This document shows, in pieces, positions 3,520 through 58,200 of a DNA stretch of 64,000 nt (position 1 is the first letter of the stretch; each line of letters opens with the position of its first letter). The translations under genes were made by a program, and so were the position numbers. The DNA comes from Carpediemonas membranifera BICM (Eukaryota > Protista > Fornicata). The stretch spans positions 124,001-188,000 of the forward strand of contig JAHDYR010000006.1 in the NCBI GenBank assembly GCA_019828565.1, given 5' to 3'. The notes beneath the pieces were generated by a model. That model did not search any database. It was not told the DNA's origin and saw nothing but the letters and a program-made list of their open reading frames with translations.

Positions 3520-3704
3520 TCGGCGCTCTTGTCCGCGCACACATTCATAACCTGCGAAAAGTGACGCAACGGAGAGGCAGTCAACCTCAGGCACAGAGTG
3601 CAACACCAGGCCTCACCATACTCATCAATCCGCCGTTTTGGGCATTGTGCATAAACTGCACCAACAACAGCCCTGTTACCAGTCCATCACCACTGCGGCC
3701 TCAA

Positions 3705-5243
3705 ATGTCCGACCGAGCGTTAACTACACGTGCAATTTTCCGAAAAATCATACAAATCGTCTTATCAGCGCGCATTGATGCTGAGTTCCTACTCCCCGGA
3801 GCCACGCCTGCCGCAGACCTCTTCTCTCTTTCCCTACCATCAAGCGAGCTTATTAATCGCACGTTAGACGATATATTCGGTACATCTGCCGTCTCTCCCA
3901 CTGCGCTGTGCATCGACATTCTCACTGTTCCTCCTTCGCGAGCACCATGCCGTCCCCACTTCCTGCCAGGCACAGACTCGGACCAGGCCACCCTGCTTGA
4001 GCGTTGGACGTTCATCCGGCCCACTACCTCCACTATAGTACGGAGTCAGGACCGAGCAGCTGTTGCCTCGTTCTGTCGGCACCTCTACTCCCGTCTGAGA
4101 ATACTCCCGACCAGTTCGTTGGGATCTATAGCGACGCAGGTCGAGTCTACACTCGAGAACGCCGAGTTTGTTCGCATGCCCGTCCTCTTCGCGATTTCTC
4201 TCTCGCAGAAGTCCCCATCGATGATGTCTTTTGCAGCAAAGTCTTCCAGACTCACTATGTCGTCCCCGGCTGGCATGAAAGCAGAACTGCAGTTCCTTGC
4301 ACGGCCTGACGTTGAAGACGTAGTGAGAGAATCGATCCTTGCTTCCCAGAGTGGGTCAGGCCGTCCTGCTCAAAGATCTGCTGAAGACTTGCTTGATTTT
4401 GCAAACTCAAGCTCGAGTCGGCCTCACACAGTCATCGCCGACTTCTACTCTCCCCCGATCGAGAGCGTAATGATGGCACCAATTGTCGCGGGTCAGACTG
4501 ATAATGTTTTCCAGAGTGTACCGCGTGCTGAGCTCTCCGGCCTGTCCATGTCATCCGCAGCGGTCGACCAGATGTGGAATATCCCAGATACGTTTCCCCC
4601 GAACATGATGGCCGGCATCCGCCCCAAGGCCCCCCCCACGACAACACTGATGCCCCCGCCTATGTATGACCGTGAAGCGGCCTCACCGGGCGGCACTCAG
4701 CCCCATGCCACTTCTCTGGACGAGGAGATGGCCAGTATTCTGAAGACTCTGGTGATTGGGGACGAGCACGATCCGTTCAAACTGCCCGAGCTCGGTCCGA
4801 TCGCCCAGGATGAGAACTTGGCGCCGCTGATGAACTTTAACCTCACGAATAGGTACATGCCCCCGGACGTGGGTCGAAATAAGCTCAGGTCGCTCCCGAC
4901 AGCCCCGTTCACCGTGCCTGAGTATAGAACACCGCAGGATAAGAGCATCGATGACCTCGAGGGTGTGGGAGCCGCACTGCTCGCCCTGGAGTGCGCTAAA
5001 CGGGCTTTGGGCGTGCCTGCGTCGGCGAATGACATCCGCGTGACTCCAATGACTGTGGAACGAGATATTAATAGAGATTTACTCGCTGACCGCAATTCCG
5101 TGACAATATTCCCTGAAGACGAGGACTCGACCGACTTTGTGCTCCCCCCGGAGACACGGGACAACATCGAGGGCGTCTACTCCGACTACCGGGGTCGGGT
5201 TGGGCAATACAAGGACCTCGTCAAGTTCCTAGCAAATGGGTGA
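3705..5243 (+). CDS. ATG13: Atg13-like protein (N-terminal HORMA domain plus disordered tail)
   Basis: KIIQIVLSAR...DLFSLSL...LCIDIL...LLERW...FCRHLYSRLRILP follows the Atg13 HORMA motif order; low-complexity Ser/Pro C-terminus. Confidence 0.7.
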   Translation: MSDRALTTRAIFRKIIQIVLSARIDAEFLLPGATPAADLFSLSLPSSELINRTLDDIFGTSAVSPTALCIDILTVPPSRAPCRPHFLPGTDSDQATLLERWTFIRPTTSTIVRSQDRAAVASFCRHLYSRLRILPTSSLGSIATQVESTLENAEFVRMPVLFAISLSQKSPSMMSFAAKSSRLTMSSPAGMKAELQFLARPDVEDVVRESILASQSGSGRPAQRSAEDLLDFANSSSSRPHTVIADFYSPPIESVMMAPIVAGQTDNVFQSVPRAELSGLSMSSAAVDQMWNIPDTFPPNMMAGIRPKAPPTTTLMPPPMYDREAASPGGTQPHATSLDEEMASILKTLVIGDEHDPFKLPELGPIAQDENLAPLMNFNLTNRYMPPDVGRNKLRSLPTAPFTVPEYRTPQDKSIDDLEGVGAALLALECAKRALGVPASANDIRVTPMTVERDINRDLLADRNSVTIFPEDEDSTDFVLPPETRDNIEGVYSDYRGRVGQYKDLVKFLANG

Positions 5244-5537
5244 GGGGTGGTCGTAAATTATAGTGGTTTATGGCTCTCTTTGGGTTATGGATCAATTATC
5301 AGTTATGTGGCTTTTTAAGCAAAGCTGGACTGCCGCTGACGGATTTGTTGGTAGAATAATCGTTGGATATCAGTTTGCGACACGATAATCCAATAATCCT
5401 TGGATGGTGACCAGTAAGGGCTATACGAAGATCGTATTCGAGGCCCTACCAGCACTTGTGGTGTCAAGATGGGGGTCAATCAAATTCATTTTTGATCGAA
5501 TCGAACACCAACAACTCCTAACACCACACTGCCAGCC

Positions 5538-6323
5538 ATGGACGCGGAGAAATGGATGGCAAGTTACAAAACAACACGAGAGCTCTCAGAAAAGCTAGTA
5601 GACCTCGTTAGACAGAAGACAGCGGCGGAGAACGAGCAAGTCGCCTCCCAATTCCGCCTCAAGCTCAGAACACAGTCAAAATCGCTCGATCCACAGATCA
5701 AAGTGCTCAATGCGGACCTCCAGAAGATGCGTAGGAACCCTGTAGTATACCGCCTGACCCGCGCGGATATCCAGGAGCGGATGAAGCTCATGGACATCCT
5801 CAAGAAGCAGCAAGAGCTCATTGCCGTAGGAATCAACCCCACGCGCCAGAAGCCGACGCATTCCCAGAATACGAACCCTCTCTTCGAGTACAAGGAGACT
5901 TCGACGACCCAGGGGGCGAACAACATGGAGCTCATGGAGATCCAGCGGGAGATCATGGAGGTCAAGCACGGGGCCAAGCTCGATCAGATCAGCCAGCACA
6001 TGACTGATCTGAAGGAGATCGGAGTGACAATCGGGGATGAGCTCGACGAGGGTGACGAAATCATAGACACGCTCGACTCAAACATGACTGCGACCACAAA
6101 TAGACTCAAAGCGGCGGCCCGGCGGGTGGAGAAGACGAGGAAGAAGGTCCGTATCGGGTGGAAGATGCTCTGTCTCAACACGTGCGCCTTTGTACTCATG
6201 CTCGTCCTGGCCGTCACCGTGTTCATCCCGAACGACGGCATACTGAACGAGCACGAGGCGTCAGACGTGCCCGCTGCTGCGACGTCTCTTCTTCAGCTCA
6301 TGCCTTCATTAAATTTAGATTAG
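5538..6323 (+). CDS. Qc-SNARE, syntaxin-8/SYP5/syntaxin-6-like
   Basis: N-terminal helical bundle, SNARE motif (LDQISQHMTDLKEIGVTIGDELDE...LDSNM) and C-terminal TM helix. Confidence 0.82.
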   Translation: MDAEKWMASYKTTRELSEKLVDLVRQKTAAENEQVASQFRLKLRTQSKSLDPQIKVLNADLQKMRRNPVVYRLTRADIQERMKLMDILKKQQELIAVGINPTRQKPTHSQNTNPLFEYKETSTTQGANNMELMEIQREIMEVKHGAKLDQISQHMTDLKEIGVTIGDELDEGDEIIDTLDSNMTATTNRLKAAARRVEKTRKKVRIGWKMLCLNTCAFVLMLVLAVTVFIPNDGILNEHEASDVPAAATSLLQLMPSLNLD

Positions 6324-6555
6324 ACGACCACAAGAGATGGACGGTGTGGTATTTATATCGAGCGTTGCCCAACCTTGAGCTCAGACGCCAGTCTCAGGGG
6401 CAATGGGGGTCACGCTGCGGTAATAGTAGTTCATGTACAATGCGAGCAGTGGTGGCAGACTCGCGAGAGCTGGTGCATCAGCGATATGCTGGCCAGGATG
6501 ATGGGGATGCGGGCAGACACTTATAAGCTGACGAATATGCGAACTCTGTAGGCGA

Positions 6556-31074: not shown

Positions 31075-32955
31075 TTACATTCCAGGGTCAACCGGCCGTT
31101 CTGCCGGCTGCGAATCGAACATCATCAAGGCCGGAGTCGCCTGAGGCTGTCCGCGCTGCCTCGGCGGCCCCGACTCCCTTGCCCGACCCAACCCCACGGG
31201 TCCCACTGAGGGGGTCGCCGGTCCGGGGGCTCCTCCCGTGCTGAAGACAAGCCCTGACTCCCGGGGTGACTGAGGGAAGGTCGGTGGGGCTCGGGGAGAG
31301 GTCACCGCGCTCGAGCGGTTGCTGAAAGACGCCAGACGACGCTGGCCTTCCATCGCCTTTTCCACCGCCTCTCTGGCAGCCCGAATCGCTTCTTTGTGCG
31401 ATCGCGGCCGAGACGGCGGCCTCAGCACCTCCACCCTTGAATTCGACGGGGCCCTCGACAGGGTCGCCTCCGCCTGTTCCCACTTGGTCCCAACCGATAG
31501 CCCAGGTTCCGGGGGCTCAGAGCCCGCCGGAGAGGCCATGGGCGAAGGTCCAGAGGCGAGGGCATTCATCTTGGCAATAGCCTCGCCGACGTTGGGGGCG
31601 GCGCTCGGGTAGTATCCTGGTCTGGAGAACGGGTCTGTGTGGTCTATCGCCTGGCTTGATAGCGACTGAGATTGAGCGGGGATAGAGATCATCGGCACAA
31701 CCATGTCCGGCATGATTGCTCTCTTTGGTGTGACCGGCCGAGATCTGGTACGGGGAATCTCGGGTATATCTGAGACCGACGACCCGGCCCGACTGTGGGA
31801 AAGTTCATATGACATCTCAGGCGGAGACATCGCCGTAACCGGCACCTGAACTGGGCTGGCGACGGGCATACGACGCTCTGCGGCCCTGGGCGTCGTCCTC
31901 ATGGCCTGGGGGAGACGGTGGATGTCTGGGGTGCTCGGCTTGTCCCTCAGCTCGCGGCGGGAAGGCCTAGACATCCCTGTCAAGTTGGGCGAGCACAGTT
32001 CAGAGGCTGGGGTGCGTGGCCGAAGGGGGTGGTGGAAGGGCGTGTCGCGTGTTGGACTGCTGGTGCTCTGGGCGATTGAGAATGTGGAGGGCGTGGGGGA
32101 GGCTGGCGGTGTAGTCTGGGTGCATGCCGCAACGGCAGTGCCAGTCGGGGCGGCAGGGGGCTCGGCAATCTCCTCGCGCTCCTCTTCGTGCTCGCTAGCG
32201 ACTGAGTTGGAGTCGCTGCTTTCATCTTCTCTCTTTGATTCATCATTGGGTTCAGCGCTGGCTTGACCATCATTCCCATTGTCATCCTGCTCCGTCTCTG
32301 GGTCGGAATCTGTCTGCTTATCACCGAGCACGATGGGGTCGTCTGCCAAGATGGAGGCCACTGCAACGAGGTCCGCGGGCTCCATCCCCATGTCTCCGGC
32401 TGCGGGGGCGGGGGCGGGGCTCTCATCGCCGACCGGGGGCTCATCATCCTCGGGGACTGCCGGTTCGATGACCTCGGACAGTTCTGTATCCTCCAGCTGG
32501 CTGGGCTCCACCGCTGCCTCGGACTCTGGCTCAACAGGTTCCGTGGCCTCTTCTGGCTCCTGGGCCTCGGGCAGGAGGTCATGGGGCTCTGCCTGAGGTG
32601 TAGGGTCAGCAGGCTCGGGCTCTTGGAATTCATAGGGCTCAATCTGGACCTCTTCTAACTGTTCTACCGTGTCTTCTGTCTCAATAGGCTCGGATTCGGG
32701 AGAATCGTCGTTTTTCGCTTCTTGAAGGGGTGGAATTCCGTCATACGGCAGCCGGGTAGCTCCATCGCGTAGCTTTTGACGCACAAGAATGCTATCTGCG
32801 AACACATCACTGAATAACGGCATCTGCTCACCCTCTAGAGGCTCAGGAATCACGGCTTCTCCGTTAGGCACGACACTAGACCTTGCGTAGGACAACTCGT
32901 AGTGCATTTCGTCAGTTCCATAGATGGAGAGAAATGCAACATCGCTAGTCGTCAT
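31075..32955 (-). CDS. Hypothetical acidic/Pro-Ser-rich disordered protein
   Basis: 626 aa ORF, low complexity. Confidence 0.7.
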   Translation of the reverse strand: MTTSDVAFLSIYGTDEMHYELSYARSSVVPNGEAVIPEPLEGEQMPLFSDVFADSILVRQKLRDGATRLPYDGIPPLQEAKNDDSPESEPIETEDTVEQLEEVQIEPYEFQEPEPADPTPQAEPHDLLPEAQEPEEATEPVEPESEAAVEPSQLEDTELSEVIEPAVPEDDEPPVGDESPAPAPAAGDMGMEPADLVAVASILADDPIVLGDKQTDSDPETEQDDNGNDGQASAEPNDESKREDESSDSNSVASEHEEEREEIAEPPAAPTGTAVAACTQTTPPASPTPSTFSIAQSTSSPTRDTPFHHPLRPRTPASELCSPNLTGMSRPSRRELRDKPSTPDIHRLPQAMRTTPRAAERRMPVASPVQVPVTAMSPPEMSYELSHSRAGSSVSDIPEIPRTRSRPVTPKRAIMPDMVVPMISIPAQSQSLSSQAIDHTDPFSRPGYYPSAAPNVGEAIAKMNALASGPSPMASPAGSEPPEPGLSVGTKWEQAEATLSRAPSNSRVEVLRPPSRPRSHKEAIRAAREAVEKAMEGQRRLASFSNRSSAVTSPRAPPTFPQSPRESGLVFSTGGAPGPATPSVGPVGLGRARESGPPRQRGQPQATPALMMFDSQPAERPVDPGM

Positions 32956-33033: not shown

Positions 33034-33469
33034 ACACAGCTCATTTGCATTTGTTCGTTTACATAAATCAGTATCGGAAGACTGCAGTATCTCACTCGTC
33101 TGCCCCTTCTGCCGCGCGAGGTTCCGTAGAACTCGCTACACGAGGCGCACGATGCGATGCCACAACCCGAATTGTCAAGGTGCTCCATGGTACAGACAGC
33201 AACGCCTCAATTCCGATCCTACATCCACTTGGCTCAATCTCTCCCACAGAGACAAGACTGCTGCACAGAACATCTTGGATTGCGGCCTCATGACGGATGC
33301 ACAGTATCAAGCCAGTGCTTTCAGAAATCCAGCCCGTCTTCCCAACTATAACCCCAATACACCAATTACGGCTAACCAGCCGCTAGTCTTCGCCTCCGGG
33401 CAAGCTAATTGAAGTGGAGAGACGCAGTGCTTGCACTGTGCACTCTATGATACTTCACACAGCTCATTT
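33034..33469 (+). mobile_element. Putative non-autonomous Fanzor-derived insertion bounded by a 13-bp direct repeat
   Basis: acacagctcattt at 33034-33046 and 33457-33469 brackets the Fanzor remnant and its downstream hairpin. Confidence 0.5.
33065..33412 (+). pseudogene. Fanzor/TnpB-family nuclease 3' remnant (RuvC-II, Zn finger, RuvC-III)
   Basis: One frame reads VSEDCSISLVCPFCRARFRRTRYTRRTMRCHNPNCQGAPW...LNLSHRDKTAAQNIL, clearly paralogous to the 54015-54330 segment. Confidence 0.85.
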
Positions 33470-33485: not shown

Positions 33486-34220
33486 TCACAAATTGTACAT
33501 ATCCTGGAGTATCCGCATTGTATCGTCCGGGTTAGCGACCTTATGGCCGACTGTCCTGGGGTGCTCATACAGTTCATGATCGTTCCCACCGACGTCAGTT
33601 TTGTCTCCGAAGAAGTGAATCGTGTAGTCATCCGGGATGAACTGGAGGCAGTACGTCTTGTCCCAGCCCTTAGGGTAGATGTCCACTGAGATCTGCCCAC
33701 CGATGGCAAAGTTCAGATCCCACGTGCCAAAGAGCGTGTTCATCAGCTCCACATACTTCTTACGAATGTGGTGCACGCTGTCATACTCCTCGAATGCATC
33801 CCGCTCTTCCTGGCTGACCCCACGACCACAGGGGGAGACGTTGAGCAAGCCCTTGCGGTACTCAAAGAAGGTCCCGCGCTTGACGGGGAGGCGGACATCG
33901 GCAAAGTGCCGCATGGATTCGTTCATGAGGGTTTGGAGCCTGTCCTCGCCGAGGGCCGTGGCGAATGAGCCTTCGTGCTGAAGCTCGTTGTTCTTATAGT
34001 AAACGAGGCCGTTCTCGCTGAAGACGTACTCGAAGTCGCGCATGAAGCGCTCTCCAAGCTGCTCCTTCTGCTTCGAGAGGTCGGAACCGCCCACGATGCC
34101 GAGTGATACGCCTTTCTCCTTCTTCAGCTGAAGCAGGAGATTGTAGAGAGCGTTTGTGACCATACACCGCGGTTTTGTGAGTGTTCCATCCACGTCAAAC
34201 AGGAGAAGCGTCCTCTTCAT
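33486..34220 (-). CDS. PMM: Phosphomannomutase (eukaryotic HAD IIB, Sec53/PMM2)
   Basis: FDVDGTLT, VGGSD, SENG, KRGTFFEYR, GGQISVD, GWDKTYCL, FFGDKT..GGND. Confidence 0.97.
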   Translation of the reverse strand: MKRTLLLFDVDGTLTKPRCMVTNALYNLLLQLKKEKGVSLGIVGGSDLSKQKEQLGERFMRDFEYVFSENGLVYYKNNELQHEGSFATALGEDRLQTLMNESMRHFADVRLPVKRGTFFEYRKGLLNVSPCGRGVSQEERDAFEEYDSVHHIRKKYVELMNTLFGTWDLNFAIGGQISVDIYPKGWDKTYCLQFIPDDYTIHFFGDKTDVGGNDHELYEHPRTVGHKVANPDDTMRILQDMYNL

Positions 34221-52994: not shown

Positions 52995-53741
52995 TTAGTC
53001 AGTGAATCTGATAGTCTCATCCGCAAAGATCTCGTTGTAGCATGCCGCCATGATGGTCGGGATGTCTTTCGCCAGGCTGACGTCTACCCTGGTGTTCTCA
53101 GACAGGTCCTCCAAGGTCTCGGTGAAGTCCGCCGGATCCGTTCCCATGTGATAGCCGAGCAGGGCCAGCTTGTGTGTCTTGTCAACTGCATTGACCTCTT
53201 CGAGGAAGTAAAAGCTCTGCACCGGCTTGCCTGGAGCCCGCACAGTCTCGGCTCGAAGAACACGGCGGCCGGGACCACTCGCACGTTTCATCCTGGCCAC
53301 TGGGTGGTCGGGACTGACGTATTCCGGGAGCCATCCGATCAAGGAGCCGACCTGATGCTGGAAGACCTTGTTGTCCCGCTTGGAAGTGTCCTCTGTATCG
53401 TGAATGCGGGCCTTAAGGTACTCTGCAAGCTTCTTTGTACGCATGAACTCGGTCTCGAGCTCGACTGGGGCTGCAGCTCCGTGTTGTTTGATGTCGGCGA
53501 GGCGGGCGCGGAGGGAGGCAGCTTCTTCCTTGAGAGCATCAAATTCTACCATATGCGCTTCATGAGCCCATTTGAGAGGGTTCTCGGACATATGCATGAC
53601 GATATAGGACGGAGCAGCTACCATCTTCATCGTCATCGTAGCTTCAAACGTGTTGTCCGTGCCATCTCCGTAGAAATCAGACAAATCAGCCTCAAGGTCT
53701 TCAATATCGATCACATCGTAATCCTCGTTGTCGCTACCCAT
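52995..53741 (-). CDS. Hypothetical protein
   Basis: About 250 aa from ATG 53741; the upstream in-frame extension overlaps the candidate omegaRNA and is probably non-coding. Confidence 0.65.
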   Translation of the reverse strand: MGSDNEDYDVIDIEDLEADLSDFYGDGTDNTFEATMTMKMVAAPSYIVMHMSENPLKWAHEAHMVEFDALKEEAASLRARLADIKQHGAAAPVELETEFMRTKKLAEYLKARIHDTEDTSKRDNKVFQHQVGSLIGWLPEYVSPDHPVARMKRASGPGRRVLRAETVRAPGKPVQSFYFLEEVNAVDKTHKLALLGYHMGTDPADFTETLEDLSENTRVDVSLAKDIPTIMAACYNEIFADETIRFTD

Positions 53742-53889
53742 CACAATGTGAAATACCGCCCTTCTTGCCCGAATTGTCAGTTTTGACCCAGGATCTGACT
53801 GACTGAGCGTTCGGGCAGCCCAGGGCCAGTGGGGCCGGTGTATAGTCAGGTATGTATAAGGGTTACCGCTTGTGCCGCGCAGGATTAGA

Positions 53890-54014
53890 ATTGTTGAGTC
53901 CAAAACACACAGTGATCCAAGCAGCATCAGGATCGCAGTGTGGTTCATCATACTCTATCAATCGTGCGCTGCATATCACGCGCGCTGTAGCGCGTGCTTG
54001 CTCAACTTAGCAAG
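53890..54014 (-). ncRNA. Candidate Fanzor omegaRNA
   Basis: Three hairpins immediately after the Fanzor stop: 53997-54014, 53977-53996 and 53906-53942. Confidence 0.45.
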
Positions 54015-55152
54015 TTAATGATAGCGAGGAAGAGCACCTCTCTGGGAGTCGTAGTGGAAAGGAGATTGCTCTATCTGATCTGAAGTTGCATCGTAGGTGC
54101 ACCAAAGGATGTTCTCGCTGGCGCTCTTATCTCGGTGAGAGAGATTGAGAAGCATGTCTCTCTGCTCGGGATGCCGACGTAGCCGTTCAACGCGCCATGG
54201 AGCTCGTCCAGCCTCCCTCGCACGCGGGATTCTGGCAGAGCATGGTGCGGTGTGTGTGCACCACACGTCTGAAGTGTGCTTTGCAGTATGGGCACACGAT
54301 GGAAGTGCGGAATTCGGAGACCATCGTGACAGTCACGACGACGTTGTGCCGGAGCATTATGCCAGGAAGTGCTCGAGCAAAGTGGCGGTACGGAGCACAG
54401 GAGGGAGTGCCGGCGGAACAAAACAGTGCAGCCCCATACGCGACTTCGAGGTGAATGGGCTCCAGGGGGCGCCCGCCGAGATCATCCAGGAGTTGACGTC
54501 CAGCCCGGGCGAAGTGCTTCTGACGCAGACAGTGATTGGCAAAAGTCGCACGGCGGAAACACTTTCTCGTCCCCTCGTTGATGTTCTGAACGATGTTCTC
54601 ATGGACAAACCTAATTGACTGTTTGAGAGCCTCTAGACTTGTCGTTTTGAACGATGCTGCGCTCATATTCACGCGGAAAGAGGGGGTGGCAGTGTAGCTC
54701 ACTCTGCCCGTCTGAGCGGCGGATCGTGTAGCCGCCCAGCGACCGAGCACCAGGGTCGAAGCCCATGAGAGCTTGAATGTCCGGGGCAGGAGTAGCCTCG
54801 GCGTCATCCTGACCGAGCCGAGCCCGCTTGTTGCTGTTACCCTTTTTGTACGTGGGCCGGTCAGCCACCCGACCGCCACCGTATTTCTCGCGACCCACCC
54901 AAACCGTCACAGCAACAGAGACCCCGTCAGTCTTCACAGAGAGCACTCTGCGGAGCTTGGTGACGTCCGTGAGACGCCGGCAATGGACGACAGATGAGCG
55001 CGTAACAGATTCCTAGTTTCTGCTGGAGCGAGAACCAAGATCCCGCCCAGAACCGTCGCTCTTACCATCGCCGACGCCCTCATGTCCGCTACCCTTCTGG
55101 TGTACGACAGGTGGGCCGTCAGACTGAACCTGTTCAGTCCTCTGGAGTTCAT
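54015..55152 (-). pseudogene. Fanzor1-like RNA-guided RuvC endonuclease, frameshifted and 5'-truncated
   Basis: Joined frames: SVKTDGVSVAV; LMGFDPG (RuvC-I D, 54755-54757); VAYGAALF; VSEFRTSIVCPYC (RuvC-II E, 54313-54315); CQNPAC; HRDKSASENIL (RuvC-III D, 54129-54131). Confidence 0.9.
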
Positions 55153-55256
55153 CCCAGGGGGGTCGACAGCTTAAGTCACCTTTACATGAATCCTCCACAT
55201 AAACCTCTAAATACCACACCGCTCCTGACATAAACTGCACTTTGAAGGAACCTCTG

Positions 55257-58200
55257 ATGGCCAGTGCTCGTGAAACGCCTGTCCTAAAGGCTCTTAGAGA
55301 GATCAAAGACTATACTGGTGCGTTTGACGACTTCCTCGATCGCATATCTGCGCTGTGCGTTGACCGTGACTCCGCCACGCAGCTTCTCACGATTTTGAGT
55401 GGAGAGAAGACAGTTGTGCAAGTAGAGACACCATCACTGAGCATTACCCTCACCATTGAGGCACTGGCTGGCGTTTTGAATAACATTCACCGCACAGACA
55501 CTGGGAGGCGCGATGGCGCTCTTAATGATCATGACGTACGCATTATTGCGGCCTCTGCAAGGCTGATCACAGCGCTCTGCCAGTATGACTTCGGATATGA
55601 GAAGATCAAGCAGCTCTGTGGCGAGTATTGCTTTGAAGCAGTCGTTCGAGCAGTCCTCCGCCCCCAGCCCGAGATTCCCCTCCCCATCAAGGCCGCCATT
55701 ATGGGTCTCGCCACCGTCCTGGCAGTAGAAGGCCGTTCCCGTGACCCTGCATCGCTTGCCCTTGACCTGCTGGACGTGGCCCGGCGTCAGTACACCGAGG
55801 TCGTCGAACGCGACGGCAACGTCGACTTCAACACAGCGCTGTGCGAGGCATTGACCACTTTCATACCTATCGCTACCCAGTCGGACAAGAAGCCGGACGC
55901 CCCCCGCCATGCCATGGCATACGTCGCCAGGTGTCTCGCCCGCCTCTCTTCAGTGCCAGCGTCGCCCGAGGCCCGGCTCAAATGGCTCACGCATGCGTGT
56001 CTGGCCCTAAGTACCGCGGTTGAGTGCCCCAAGGTCGAGGCTGCTGTACTCGGAGAGCTCACACGCGAGAGTCTGCGGGTGATGACGGTCGAGGCCGCCA
56101 GGGTCGCCCACGCATCCAGATCAGGCGCACAGCCCACCCAACAGGCCCTGTACTGCGTCCGTGCAATCGCACACCTCCTTGCCCTCCTCTCAGGCCGGGT
56201 CTCTGCCCGTCGTGGGCTCGACGCCGCCGTGGAGCTGTTCAACCTCTCCGTCTCGGGCACTGAGGTCGACGCCCTGCCCGCCCTCGTCGCATTTATAGAC
56301 ACGACCGTGGAGAAACCCGAGTCTCTCCGCTGGACGCCCAACATTGCCCCTCTCGCCGAGTCTGTGCTCAAGGTCGTCAAGTTCAGCATGACCCGCACCC
56401 CAAACGCCCACACATCCCTCTCCAGTGGCCCTCTCGCCCAGTCCAACCGCGAGAAACTTGTCGCCGCCCTCCAGTCGCCAGTTCTCTTCCCGATCGTCAG
56501 GGAAACCGTCACCGGGTTCGGGGGCTGGGTGCTGGGCCTCGACTCAGACATGGCCGGGGTCCGCCAGCTCTTCAGCACCCTCCGCGGGGACGAGGACACC
56601 AGCCCAGAGACCATGGCTCGGGTGTGGTCCATGGTCGTCGCCATACTTAGCTCCAGCAACAAGCGCAGGGGCCAGGCCGACCGTCTCCCCGCCCTGCCCG
56701 ACCTAGAGGCGCTGGCGATGGACTCCCTGGCACTGGCCCACCACAGGCTGACGGACCCCGACTACACACTGACTGCGGACCCCGTAGACGTCGCCCACCT
56801 CGCTGATGTGGCGGGCAGCGTGTATCTAGCAATCGCCCAGCTCCTCCACGCCGACCCCAGCCCAGCCCTGGCCCAGTTCGCCGTCAGTCGGCTGCCCACG
56901 GCGTTCCTCGGCCTCAGTGAGACGAGCGGCAGCACCACCCTCGCATACGGCACATACGCCCTGCTCGGCATGCTCGTGGCCCAGGACGCCGTGCCACTGG
57001 CCGACCTGCTCACCACCATTGAGGCCGTCCTCTACTGCCTCGGCGTCGGTCTCCACACCTCTCTGGCCGAGGTCCTGCCGACGATCTCCCAGGGCTTGAA
57101 GCGCGTGCTGGCCAACTCCACCGACGCCTTCGCCCTGTTCCCCGTGACGGCAGTGTTCAACTCCCTGACGGCGTACTTCTCCCTCGTCACGTCACTACCG
57201 CACGCCCCGGTCAGTGTCGTCAACGGCGTCCTCGGCGGGCTCATTGGCTTCCTGCACTACGCCTTTGGAGCCGCCCGCGCCGTTTCCCCGGTCCCCAATC
57301 TCTCCGTTGACCTCACAGCCCTCGTTGGCCAGGCTCTCAGCCCCGACGGCATGCCCGGGATCTCCCCTGTCATCGCAGCCCTCGTGCAGCTCTCCAAGGG
57401 TCCCGCCGGGCAGTGCCTGCTCGCTGCTGAGGCCATCACCCTCCTCATCCAGGCGGCTGGCACTCGGGCGGTGGCCGTGACTATCGCTGACGCCCTTCCC
57501 GTCCTCGTCGGGCGACTGGGCGATCTCGCGGTCATGACGCACGGGTCAGCCGAGGGTGCGGCCGACGCCCAGGCCGTGCTCGACATGCTCCACGTGCTGC
57601 AGACGATCATTGCATTCTCGGACCCCGACCTTGCCGTTGATTTGATCAAAAGCTCGAGGATTGTTGAGAAAATCTTCAGATCGTCAAGGCCTGGAGCCCC
57701 ATCCGTCTTCCACAAGCTCATTGGCGCTCTGCCCGTGGGTGCCCCGTCTGGCACCCTCGCGCACGTCGCGACACCCGCGGACTTCTACTACATCGCCCTG
57801 ACGCGGGTCGCCCAGCTTCTCTCGGCCATCGTCGCCCACCTTCGCTCCCCTGCCGAGCTCGCGGGTATGCTTGAGGCCTGCACCGCGATGATCACCCACC
57901 TTGCATGGGCCGACCTCCACTCGGGCTGCGACACCATCGCCGTGCAGCTCTCGACGGCTATGATGACCATCGCTTACTACTCTGTCGGCCACACCAAGGC
58001 CGGGGACATCAGAGCCGCTGTCGTGAGTCAGTACCCCACCGTCATCGCCCATTGCCTCGCCGCGTTGCCCGGCCAAGAGAACCAGGCGCCCATGGTCAAC
58101 CTCGTCGCGAAGTCGATCCGCGCACTTTATGCCTGTGTCGAATGGAACGTTTCCGAGGCACAGGTTCAGAAGCCTATGCCGCCCGTCGTCATGGAGGCGA

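Follow-up and report, generated by a model that had tools for sequence, protein, structure and literature searches.

A decayed, probably Fanzor1-type nuclease gene in Carpediemonas membranifera and the abundant element family to which it belongs

In the present work we describe an element remnant in a 64,000-nt stretch of DNA from Carpediemonas membranifera BICM (contig JAHDYR010000006.1, positions 124,001 to 188,000 of the forward strand), which is referred to here as the window. The window is C. membranifera DNA; database proteins 84-98% identical carry that species name. Positions 53871-55218 on its minus strand are very probably a dead, internally deleted copy of a non-autonomous element, the only gene of which encodes a Fanzor1-type nuclease. 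Fanzor1 is the eukaryotic branch of the TnpB/Cas12 RNA-guided nucleases. An earlier interpretation made from the letters of the window, termed the sequence-only reading below, had proposed a Fanzor gene split over several frames at this place.

The element is flanked by a 5-bp duplication and is described here along the minus strand, from its 5' to its 3' side. A host-side motif, GCAGTTTATG (55229..55238), is located 5 nt upstream of the 5' target-site duplication AGCGG (55219..55223), which is identical to the 3' duplication AGCGG at 53866..53870. The 5' terminus of the element, TGTGGTATTTAGA (55206..55218), is the 5' end common to the copies of subfamily A (see below). It is followed by the 3' fragment of another repeat, termed repeat X (55010..55205, plus strand), which holds approximately the last 55 codons and the stop of a plus-strand open reading frame (ORF) ending at 55174. 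The next 38 nt (54972..55009) are the remainder of the Fanzor 5' untranslated region (UTR); they lie between two deletions and are 97% identical to L031rc 4210-4247. The Fanzor1-like coding remnant itself (54015..54971) corresponds to residues ~320-642 plus the stop codon (54015-54017) when aligned to an intact copy, and is followed by the 3' untranslated end (53871..54014), a candidate omega RNA scaffold, the 3' boundary of which is sharp in 24 copies. The last 41 nt of the element (53871-53911) are a direct-orientation repeat of its 5' terminal sequence.

The order of motifs given by the sequence-only reading was borne out, with all motifs on the minus strand and in the frames it had named. 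KTDGVSV (54914-54934) is followed by GFDPG (54749-54763) with the RuvC-I aspartate, which is D392 of the intact protein and aligns to the DPN of SpuFz1, and by VAYGAALF (54421-54444). SEFRTS (54301-54318), which aligns to DEYKTS of SpuFz1, contains the RuvC-II glutamate E547; then come x3 and CPYC (54283-54294). CPYC and CQNPAC (54220-54237) together form the zinc finger (54220-54294) with C554, C557, C573 and C578, four cysteines that are invariant in 12 sequences. HRDKSASENIL (54105-54137), aligned to NRDMLSTCNML of SpuFz1, provides the RuvC-III aspartate D605. As had been claimed, the codons for the three RuvC acidic residues and the four-cysteine zinc finger are all present in the window copy. 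This order of motifs is not due to chance, because the same order is found in an intact 642-amino acid (aa) ORF elsewhere in the genome, and because no change at the three acidic positions or the four cysteines occurs in three subfamilies and six distant outside relatives.

The window copy is 94% identical to the intact copy, and their alignment locates three breaks in the assembled sequence: 2 nt are missing between 54967 and 54966, 23 nt are missing between 54699 and 54698, and 10 nt are inserted at 54206-54215. All three shift the frame, in agreement with the proposed minimum of three frame breaks, and the 10-nt insertion previously placed at 54204-54213 is the same event within alignment ambiguity. 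The first of the frames joined in the sequence-only reading (54934-55152) had to be discarded, as it is not Fanzor coding sequence and adds no Fanzor motif. From 55010 upwards it is the antisense of the fragment of the other repeat, at 54972-55009 it covers the Fanzor 5' UTR, and below 54972 it runs out of frame over Fanzor sequence. The loss of the N-terminal part was seen correctly: codons 1 to ~319 are absent from the window copy. They were lost by a 1120-nt internal deletion that left both element ends in place, and not by truncation; the internal copy of the terminal repeat was deleted together with 1120 nt of leader and ORF. With these codons missing and with three frame-shifting indels the copy is decayed, as had been stated, and therefore cannot make the protein. 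Taken by itself, it is an unremarkable dead remnant. The contigs of the public sequencing runs break off within the repeat, and none of them spans the window copy; the public runs X1 and X2 look like a single data set.

The window copy belongs to a large family. At least 155 matches were obtained by tblastn with the longest window piece in the 24.2 Mb genome of 69 contigs (370 first-look candidates), and these group at ~75-100% and at ~47-54% identity. The copies are present on many contigs, beside eukaryotic genes. Such a genome-wide tblastn search for intact copies, as the sequence-only reading had suggested, identified at least one intact ORF, L028:1318-3243:-, which has 642 aa and no stop inside. 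Database searches with the family protein retrieved only proteins named Carpediemonas membranifera, most of them annotated as 'hypothetical', two as 'transposase' in UniRef and one as 'cytosine deaminase'. The latter (P0001, contig C18 of genome G000), which is labelled in this way both in NCBI and in UniRef, is a 532-aa Fanzor fragment in which CPYC reads CPYR; the label is probably a misannotation.

Three subfamilies were distinguished. Subfamily A includes the intact L028 and the window copy at 54 kb, subfamily B consists of P0013, P0014, L046 and a window remnant at 33 kb, and subfamily C of L043 and L044. The proteins of subfamilies B and C are 41-50% identical to the A protein. Across all three, D392, E547 and D605 as well as C554, C557, C573 and C578 are invariant, and the same holds for the three acidic residues and the four cysteines in the 12 aligned sequences from Carpediemonas and its outside relatives. 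Family copies are 93-97% identical to one another. Together with the at least 155 matches, the 5-bp duplications found in 9 of 11 copies and the presence of at least one intact ORF, this upholds the earlier proposal that the family was active in this lineage. One chimeric copy, L011:442-2181, is B-like in its N-terminal half and belongs to subfamily A in its C-terminal half, which suggests, as far as sequence comparison goes, recombination between subfamilies.

To which branch of the RNA-guided nucleases the family belongs was addressed with sequence profiles. A profile made from Carpediemonas sequences only found 39 proteins among 1.84 billion representative proteins, eight of which are not Carpediemonas-like (expectation values (E) of 1e-8 to 7e-4). 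PF07282, the Cas12f1-like TNB domain, is matched by all eight outside proteins, by seven of them above the curated cut-off; the eighth, P0045, reaches it at E=0.0084. Profile A2, which combines the Carpediemonas sequences with six outside sequences, was then searched against the PDB. Its best matches are the three solved Fanzor1 proteins, SpuFz1 (E=4.6e-25 over 337 profile positions), GtFz1 (E=3.4e-21) and PpFz1 (E=2.5e-20), followed by the Mimivirus Fanzor2 (E=1.5e-6), TranC and Cas12f (E 1e-4 to 3e-4) and TnpB (E 0.03-0.05). The Fanzor1 values are ~15-19 orders of magnitude better than that of Fanzor2. Judged by this profile, the sequence signal singles out Fanzor1, and the Fanzor identity put forward in the sequence-only reading is sustained. 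When searched alone against SpuFz1, the outside protein P0046 gave E=4e-4 and P0045 no match. Since the outside proteins by themselves reach SpuFz1 weakly or not at all, the Carpediemonas sequences carry much of the signal, and the strong Fanzor1 signal is therefore not simply imported by the outside proteins.

In the alignment with SpuFz1, the TDG strand, RuvC-I, E-x-x-TS-x-x-CP-x-C, the second cysteine pair and RD-x-x-A-x-N are matched, and the RuvC-I motif reads DPG in Carpediemonas and DPN in SpuFz1. The active site of SpuFz1 is formed by D383, N385, E541 and D606 (PMC10432273). Of the N-terminal WED/REC part, profile A2 aligns the TDG strand and a portion of the helical region to Fanzor1. 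Two motifs had been called typical of Fanzor1. TDGVSV does align to TDGASVSV in SpuFz1 and to TDGVSISF in GtFz1. YGxAxF falls into a less conserved G-x-W stretch and, on this alignment, is not a clean Fanzor1 signature.

Furthermore, structure models of the intact protein were compared with known folds. The full-length AlphaFold model is poor overall (mean predicted local distance difference test, pLDDT, 56.5), with residues 1-380 mostly below 50 and a confident RuvC core. In the Foldseek comparison that had been suggested, the best match of this model in the PDB is SpuFz1; the top five are all Fanzor1 structures (E 3.6e-6 to 6.7e-4), and Cas12o, Fanzor2, Cas12p, Cas12f and TnpB come after them. 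A second model, of residues 301-642, reached a pLDDT of 64.7 and a predicted TM-score (pTM) of 0.65. With VIA it matched Cas12o, g, X, b, i, h and f with Z 8-10.8 over 175-229 residues and SpuFz with Z 7.6; background Z for unrelated models is 7-8, hence the margin for a match to the RuvC/TNB fold is modest. The fold searches do not separate the Fanzor1, Fanzor2 and TnpB branches. The predicted fold is that of the TnpB/Cas12 superfamily.

A number of results weigh against the assignment and are set out here together. In Pfam, neither the four window pieces, which were searched separately and without reading through the broken frames, nor the intact protein gave a significant match; PF07282 reached E=0.12 on a window piece only, and nothing on the intact protein. 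A phmmer search of the PDB with the intact protein returned no match, and the Carpediemonas-only profile found only Cas12f there, at E=0.2. Assignment to Fanzor1 thus draws on a profile that contains six outside sequences. Confidence in the two structure models is middling (pLDDT 56 and 65), comparison with Fanzor1 gave low TM-scores (0.21), and SpuFz is at rank 44 of the VIA list. With regard to a guide RNA, none of 45 pairs in the 3' tail showed a compensatory change, the copies being too alike for covariation, and Rfam gave no match on 53700-55400. Finally, among the copies examined there is only one fully intact ORF.

The anatomy of the element was deduced from copy comparison. The family unit is ~2.44 kb long (L031 reverse strand 4046-6484), and an intact unit consists of a 366-nt leader, the 642-aa ORF and a 144-nt tail. 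This ORF is the only long one in the 2.44 kb unit; no transposase, recombinase or second gene was found there. At the 3' side the unit ends sharply with ...CTGCGCAGCACA, after which unique sequence follows in 24 copies, and the 5' end reads TGTGGTATTTAGACTCAAC... The element ends are 5'-TG...CA-3', with no terminal inverted repeats beyond TG...CA. In subfamily A, the 34-41 nt at one end recur in direct orientation at the other. The sequences of subfamilies B and C are different ones built to the same plan, with TG...CA ends and a ~30-nt direct repeat at both ends; in them a pyrimidine run follows the 5' repeat, and each of the three subfamilies has a polypurine run on the antisense strand beside the 5' repeat. 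Perfect 5-bp target duplications are present in 9 of 11 subfamily A copies, to which two read by eye can be added (L028, CTTAC; L023, CTCGG), in both subfamily B copies and in two of three subfamily C copies. Most copies have lost internal sequence and retained both ends, as is usual for cut-and-paste DNA transposons.

The motif GCAsTTTAwG is located 4-6 nt upstream of the duplicated 5 bp in 8 of the 11 readable subfamily A 5' flanks and in two of three subfamily C flanks. The window as a whole contains 11 matches (at 3650, 15277, 23037, 23229, 28307, 28482, 33018, 35032, 51587, 55229 and 58122), as compared to 0.28 expected. Divergent host ORF starts, read from the sequences, are found 20-100 nt away in the window and at several other loci. 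GCAsTTTAwG is probably a host regulatory element. Of its copies, some precede ORF starts by 20-110 nt and others are within ORFs, in sense orientation. The motif was also considered as a target-adjacent motif of the nuclease and rejected, since five variable bases separate it from the flank-derived sequence and since guides derived from one locus would find no match at new ones. Likewise, a pure long terminal repeat (LTR) retroelement was considered as the carrier. Read on the antisense strand, the element has TG...CA direct repeats of 41 nt together with a polypurine run and a duplication of 5 bp, and no primer-binding site beside the repeat. The missing primer-binding site, the very short repeats and the presence of X in one of the two repeats speak against this candidate, which was not retained. 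To our knowledge, no LTRs are nearly as short as these terminal repeats. At L050, 2 nt past the 3' end of a subfamily B element (L050:3863, minus strand), the 5' tip of an A/X composite begins (TGTGGTATTTAGAGGG); this is a nested or adjacent insertion.

As for the 3' tail, the last 210 nt fold better than shuffled sequences (z = -2.7), and z across the three subfamilies is -2.7, -2.7 and -3.65.

Repeat X, which occupies the 5' side of the window element, is a sequence in its own right. The ~130 nt beside the 5' terminus recur at least 40 times with 97-100% identity and are the fixed outer end of a longer sequence. On the strand opposite to that of the Fanzor gene, X carries an ORF; it gave 109 tblastn matches, and the longest open frames have 311-392 aa. 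In different Fanzor copies, between 15 and more than 470 nt of X are present as a nested series with the same outer and a variable inner end; examples are 55010-55205 (plus strand) of the window, L025:275-750 and L034:5200-5614. X invariably joins the Fanzor unit at TTTAGACTC, after 3-5 T, and in every case it sits at TATTTAGA in the 5' tip of subfamily A Fanzor elements. L026 has an X-type insert of 15 nt that is bordered by a duplication of 17 nt, 4 nt of which come from the host DNA. As this duplication extends into the host flank, X entered a Fanzor element that was already resident. From these analyses, X is best read as a site-specific element that is 5'-truncated like non-LTR retrotransposons and targets the 5' tip of subfamily A. 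With regard to the family of its protein, Pfam, the protein atlas, the PDB and a homologue search were all uninformative, and a genome-wide RVT_1 search gave no candidate tied to X. For the reverse transcriptase domain PF00078, genome G000 gave 1519 first-look candidates, and many of these stand in open frames of 900-1440 aa. The X protein contains a stretch, ADL...IDVTV, that may resemble the restriction-like endonuclease domains of site-specific non-LTR elements. At G000:C8:930999-935577, three tandem copies of X with a period of 2080 nt are located directly upstream of a Fanzor copy, which would fit repeated insertion into a regenerated target.

Based on homology with SpuFz1, the protein of intact members would bind an RNA transcribed from the 3' part of the ORF together with the tail. 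This RNA would read on into flanking DNA, and the read-through would serve as the guide, so that the split RuvC site (D392, E547, D605) would cut DNA matching the flank. Metamonads are without Ku and DNA-PKcs, and recombination is presumed to be indispensable to them for mending breaks (PMC8516963). In such a host, which cannot rely on end joining, repair from an element-bearing copy would thus be favoured, keeping or spreading the element. Because of the 5-bp duplication, insertion itself would be ascribed to a DDE-type transposase or integrase supplied in trans. A more far-reaching reading, which we regard as rather unlikely, builds on the TG...CA ends, the 30-41 nt direct repeats, the antisense polypurine run, the 5-bp duplications and the motif 5 nt off. 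According to it, the carrier is a new type of Fanzor-bearing element, mobilised by an integrase-like enzyme that is directed to promoters, with a 5' end that has become the landing site of a 5'-truncating, retroelement-like repeat, in a host without end joining where Fanzor cuts are repaired by copying.

Three other explanations have to be weighed against a mobile element with a Fanzor1-type nuclease as its only gene. The element might move by way of RNA and not of DNA, with an antisense Fanzor transcript copied by an X reverse transcriptase and X as the primer-proximal part of a chimeric insertion. One fixed outer end with variable inner ends, a junction always at the same sequence after 3-5 T, a 5-bp duplication around the whole composite and the antisense polypurine run beside the 5' repeat of all three subfamilies would all suit this model. 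It is nevertheless unlikely: the 17-nt duplication with host flank in L026 makes X later than Fanzor, most copies keep both ends with internal deletions as DNA transposons do, the same ends and duplications occur in subfamilies B and C, where X is absent, and no reverse transcriptase domain was found for X in Pfam, the protein atlas, the PDB or the homologue searches. We rejected chimeric retrotransposition as a model because X arrived after Fanzor in L026 and because B and C are without X.

Slightly less likely again is a protein that has the TnpB/Fanzor fold and is not RNA-guided, that is, a transposon-encoded DNA-binding or regulatory factor or a guide-free nuclease. The lack of covariation and of an Rfam match in the 3' tail speaks for it, as does the strong divergence of the family, which has no Pfam match. 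On the other hand, subfamilies only 45-50% identical show no variation in all three RuvC acidic residues and in the zinc finger, which argues that the active site has been kept, and the 3' ends of three subfamilies fold better than shuffles. Moreover, the closest solved relatives are active RNA-guided nucleases (PMC10432273). A Fanzor2/IS607-type element or a prokaryotic TnpB element, arrived through bacterial contamination or recent transfer, would explain why Fanzor2, TnpB and Cas12f are also matched by the profile and why fold searches cannot separate the branches. We consider it very improbable in view of the E-values, which favour Fanzor1 over Fanzor2 by the margin given above, the copies beside eukaryotic genes on many contigs and the absence of a recombinase gene from the 2.44 kb unit. 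The 5-bp target duplications do not fit it either, as IS607 and IS200/IS605 make no target duplication (PMC3627910).

The window contains a second Fanzor remnant at 33091..33461 (plus strand), which corresponds to the final 370 nt of a subfamily B element and has its exact 3' end. It was found by a protein-level match at 33068-33352 (plus strand); blastn within the window gave no second DNA copy, so the similarity is at the protein level only. The 'second copy' to which the sequence-only reading had compared the element at 54 kb therefore belongs to a different subfamily, and is 96.6% identical to L046. It is located between the ORFs 31075-32955 and 33486-34220, both on the minus strand.

A limited literature search, which is no proof, returned no paper linking Carpediemonas or Metamonada with Fanzor or TnpB. 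Carpediemonas is not mentioned in the supplements of two Fanzor survey papers, metamonads are not mentioned in the survey texts or in Bao and Jurka 2013 (PMC3627910), and transposons are not mentioned in the genome paper. Overall, the family is a divergent and abundant Fanzor1 lineage with an unclassified carrier that has apparently not been described. It would extend the range of Fanzor1 to Metamonada, and it is divergent enough to have escaped Pfam and the genome's own annotation. As the RNA-guided nucleases of eukaryotes, Fanzors attract interest for use as compact genome editors. The family is abundant and young, in a small genome, and the intact 642-aa gene can be used for tests. A host without canonical end joining (PMC8516963) furthermore offers a natural setting for a transposon-borne nuclease when breaks need recombination.

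Among known systems and proteins outside Carpediemonas, P0046 is one of the two closest relatives, with E=9e-7 to the Carpediemonas-only profile. This 646-aa protein from a 58 kb forest-soil metagenome contig carries PF07282 and DUF8286, and its identity is ~21%. Its gene (L051:6001-7941) is surrounded by densely packed genes for GIY-YIG, H-lectin and ubiquitin-conjugating enzyme proteins; the contig may come from a large virus. ISDra2 TnpB and the miniature Cas12f (PDB 8BF8/8EXA, 7C7L) have the RuvC and zinc-finger core in common with the family by fold (Z ~8 for Cas12f; Foldseek probability 0.99 for TnpB). TnpB differs in its marginal sequence signal (E 0.03-0.05), its size of ~400 aa, its prokaryotic origin and its location in IS200/IS605 elements, which make no target duplication. 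CMe-1A of Cyanidioschyzon merolae (PMC3627910), an example of the 'non-autonomous' families with Fanzor1 only and compared by description only, is similarly a multi-copy element with Fanzor1 as the sole gene and no transposase of its own. GtFz1 of Guillardia theta and PpFz1 of Parasitella parasitica (PDB 9CER and 9CF0), with profile matches of 3.4e-21 and 2.5e-20, are larger proteins with weak similarity outside the RuvC half, although the alignment to GtFz1 also covers the N-terminal helical region (profile positions 41-518). The best match both by profile and by Foldseek is SpuFz1 of Spizellomyces punctatus (PDB 8GKH, 9CEU-9CEZ; PMC10432273). It is only 11-13% identical in structural alignments, is not reached by the Carpediemonas proteins alone, and the Carpediemonas carrier element is of a different, unclassified type; yet the two proteins are of similar size, and the catalytic residues D383/E541/D606 of SpuFz1 and D392/E547/D605 of the Carpediemonas protein nearly coincide.

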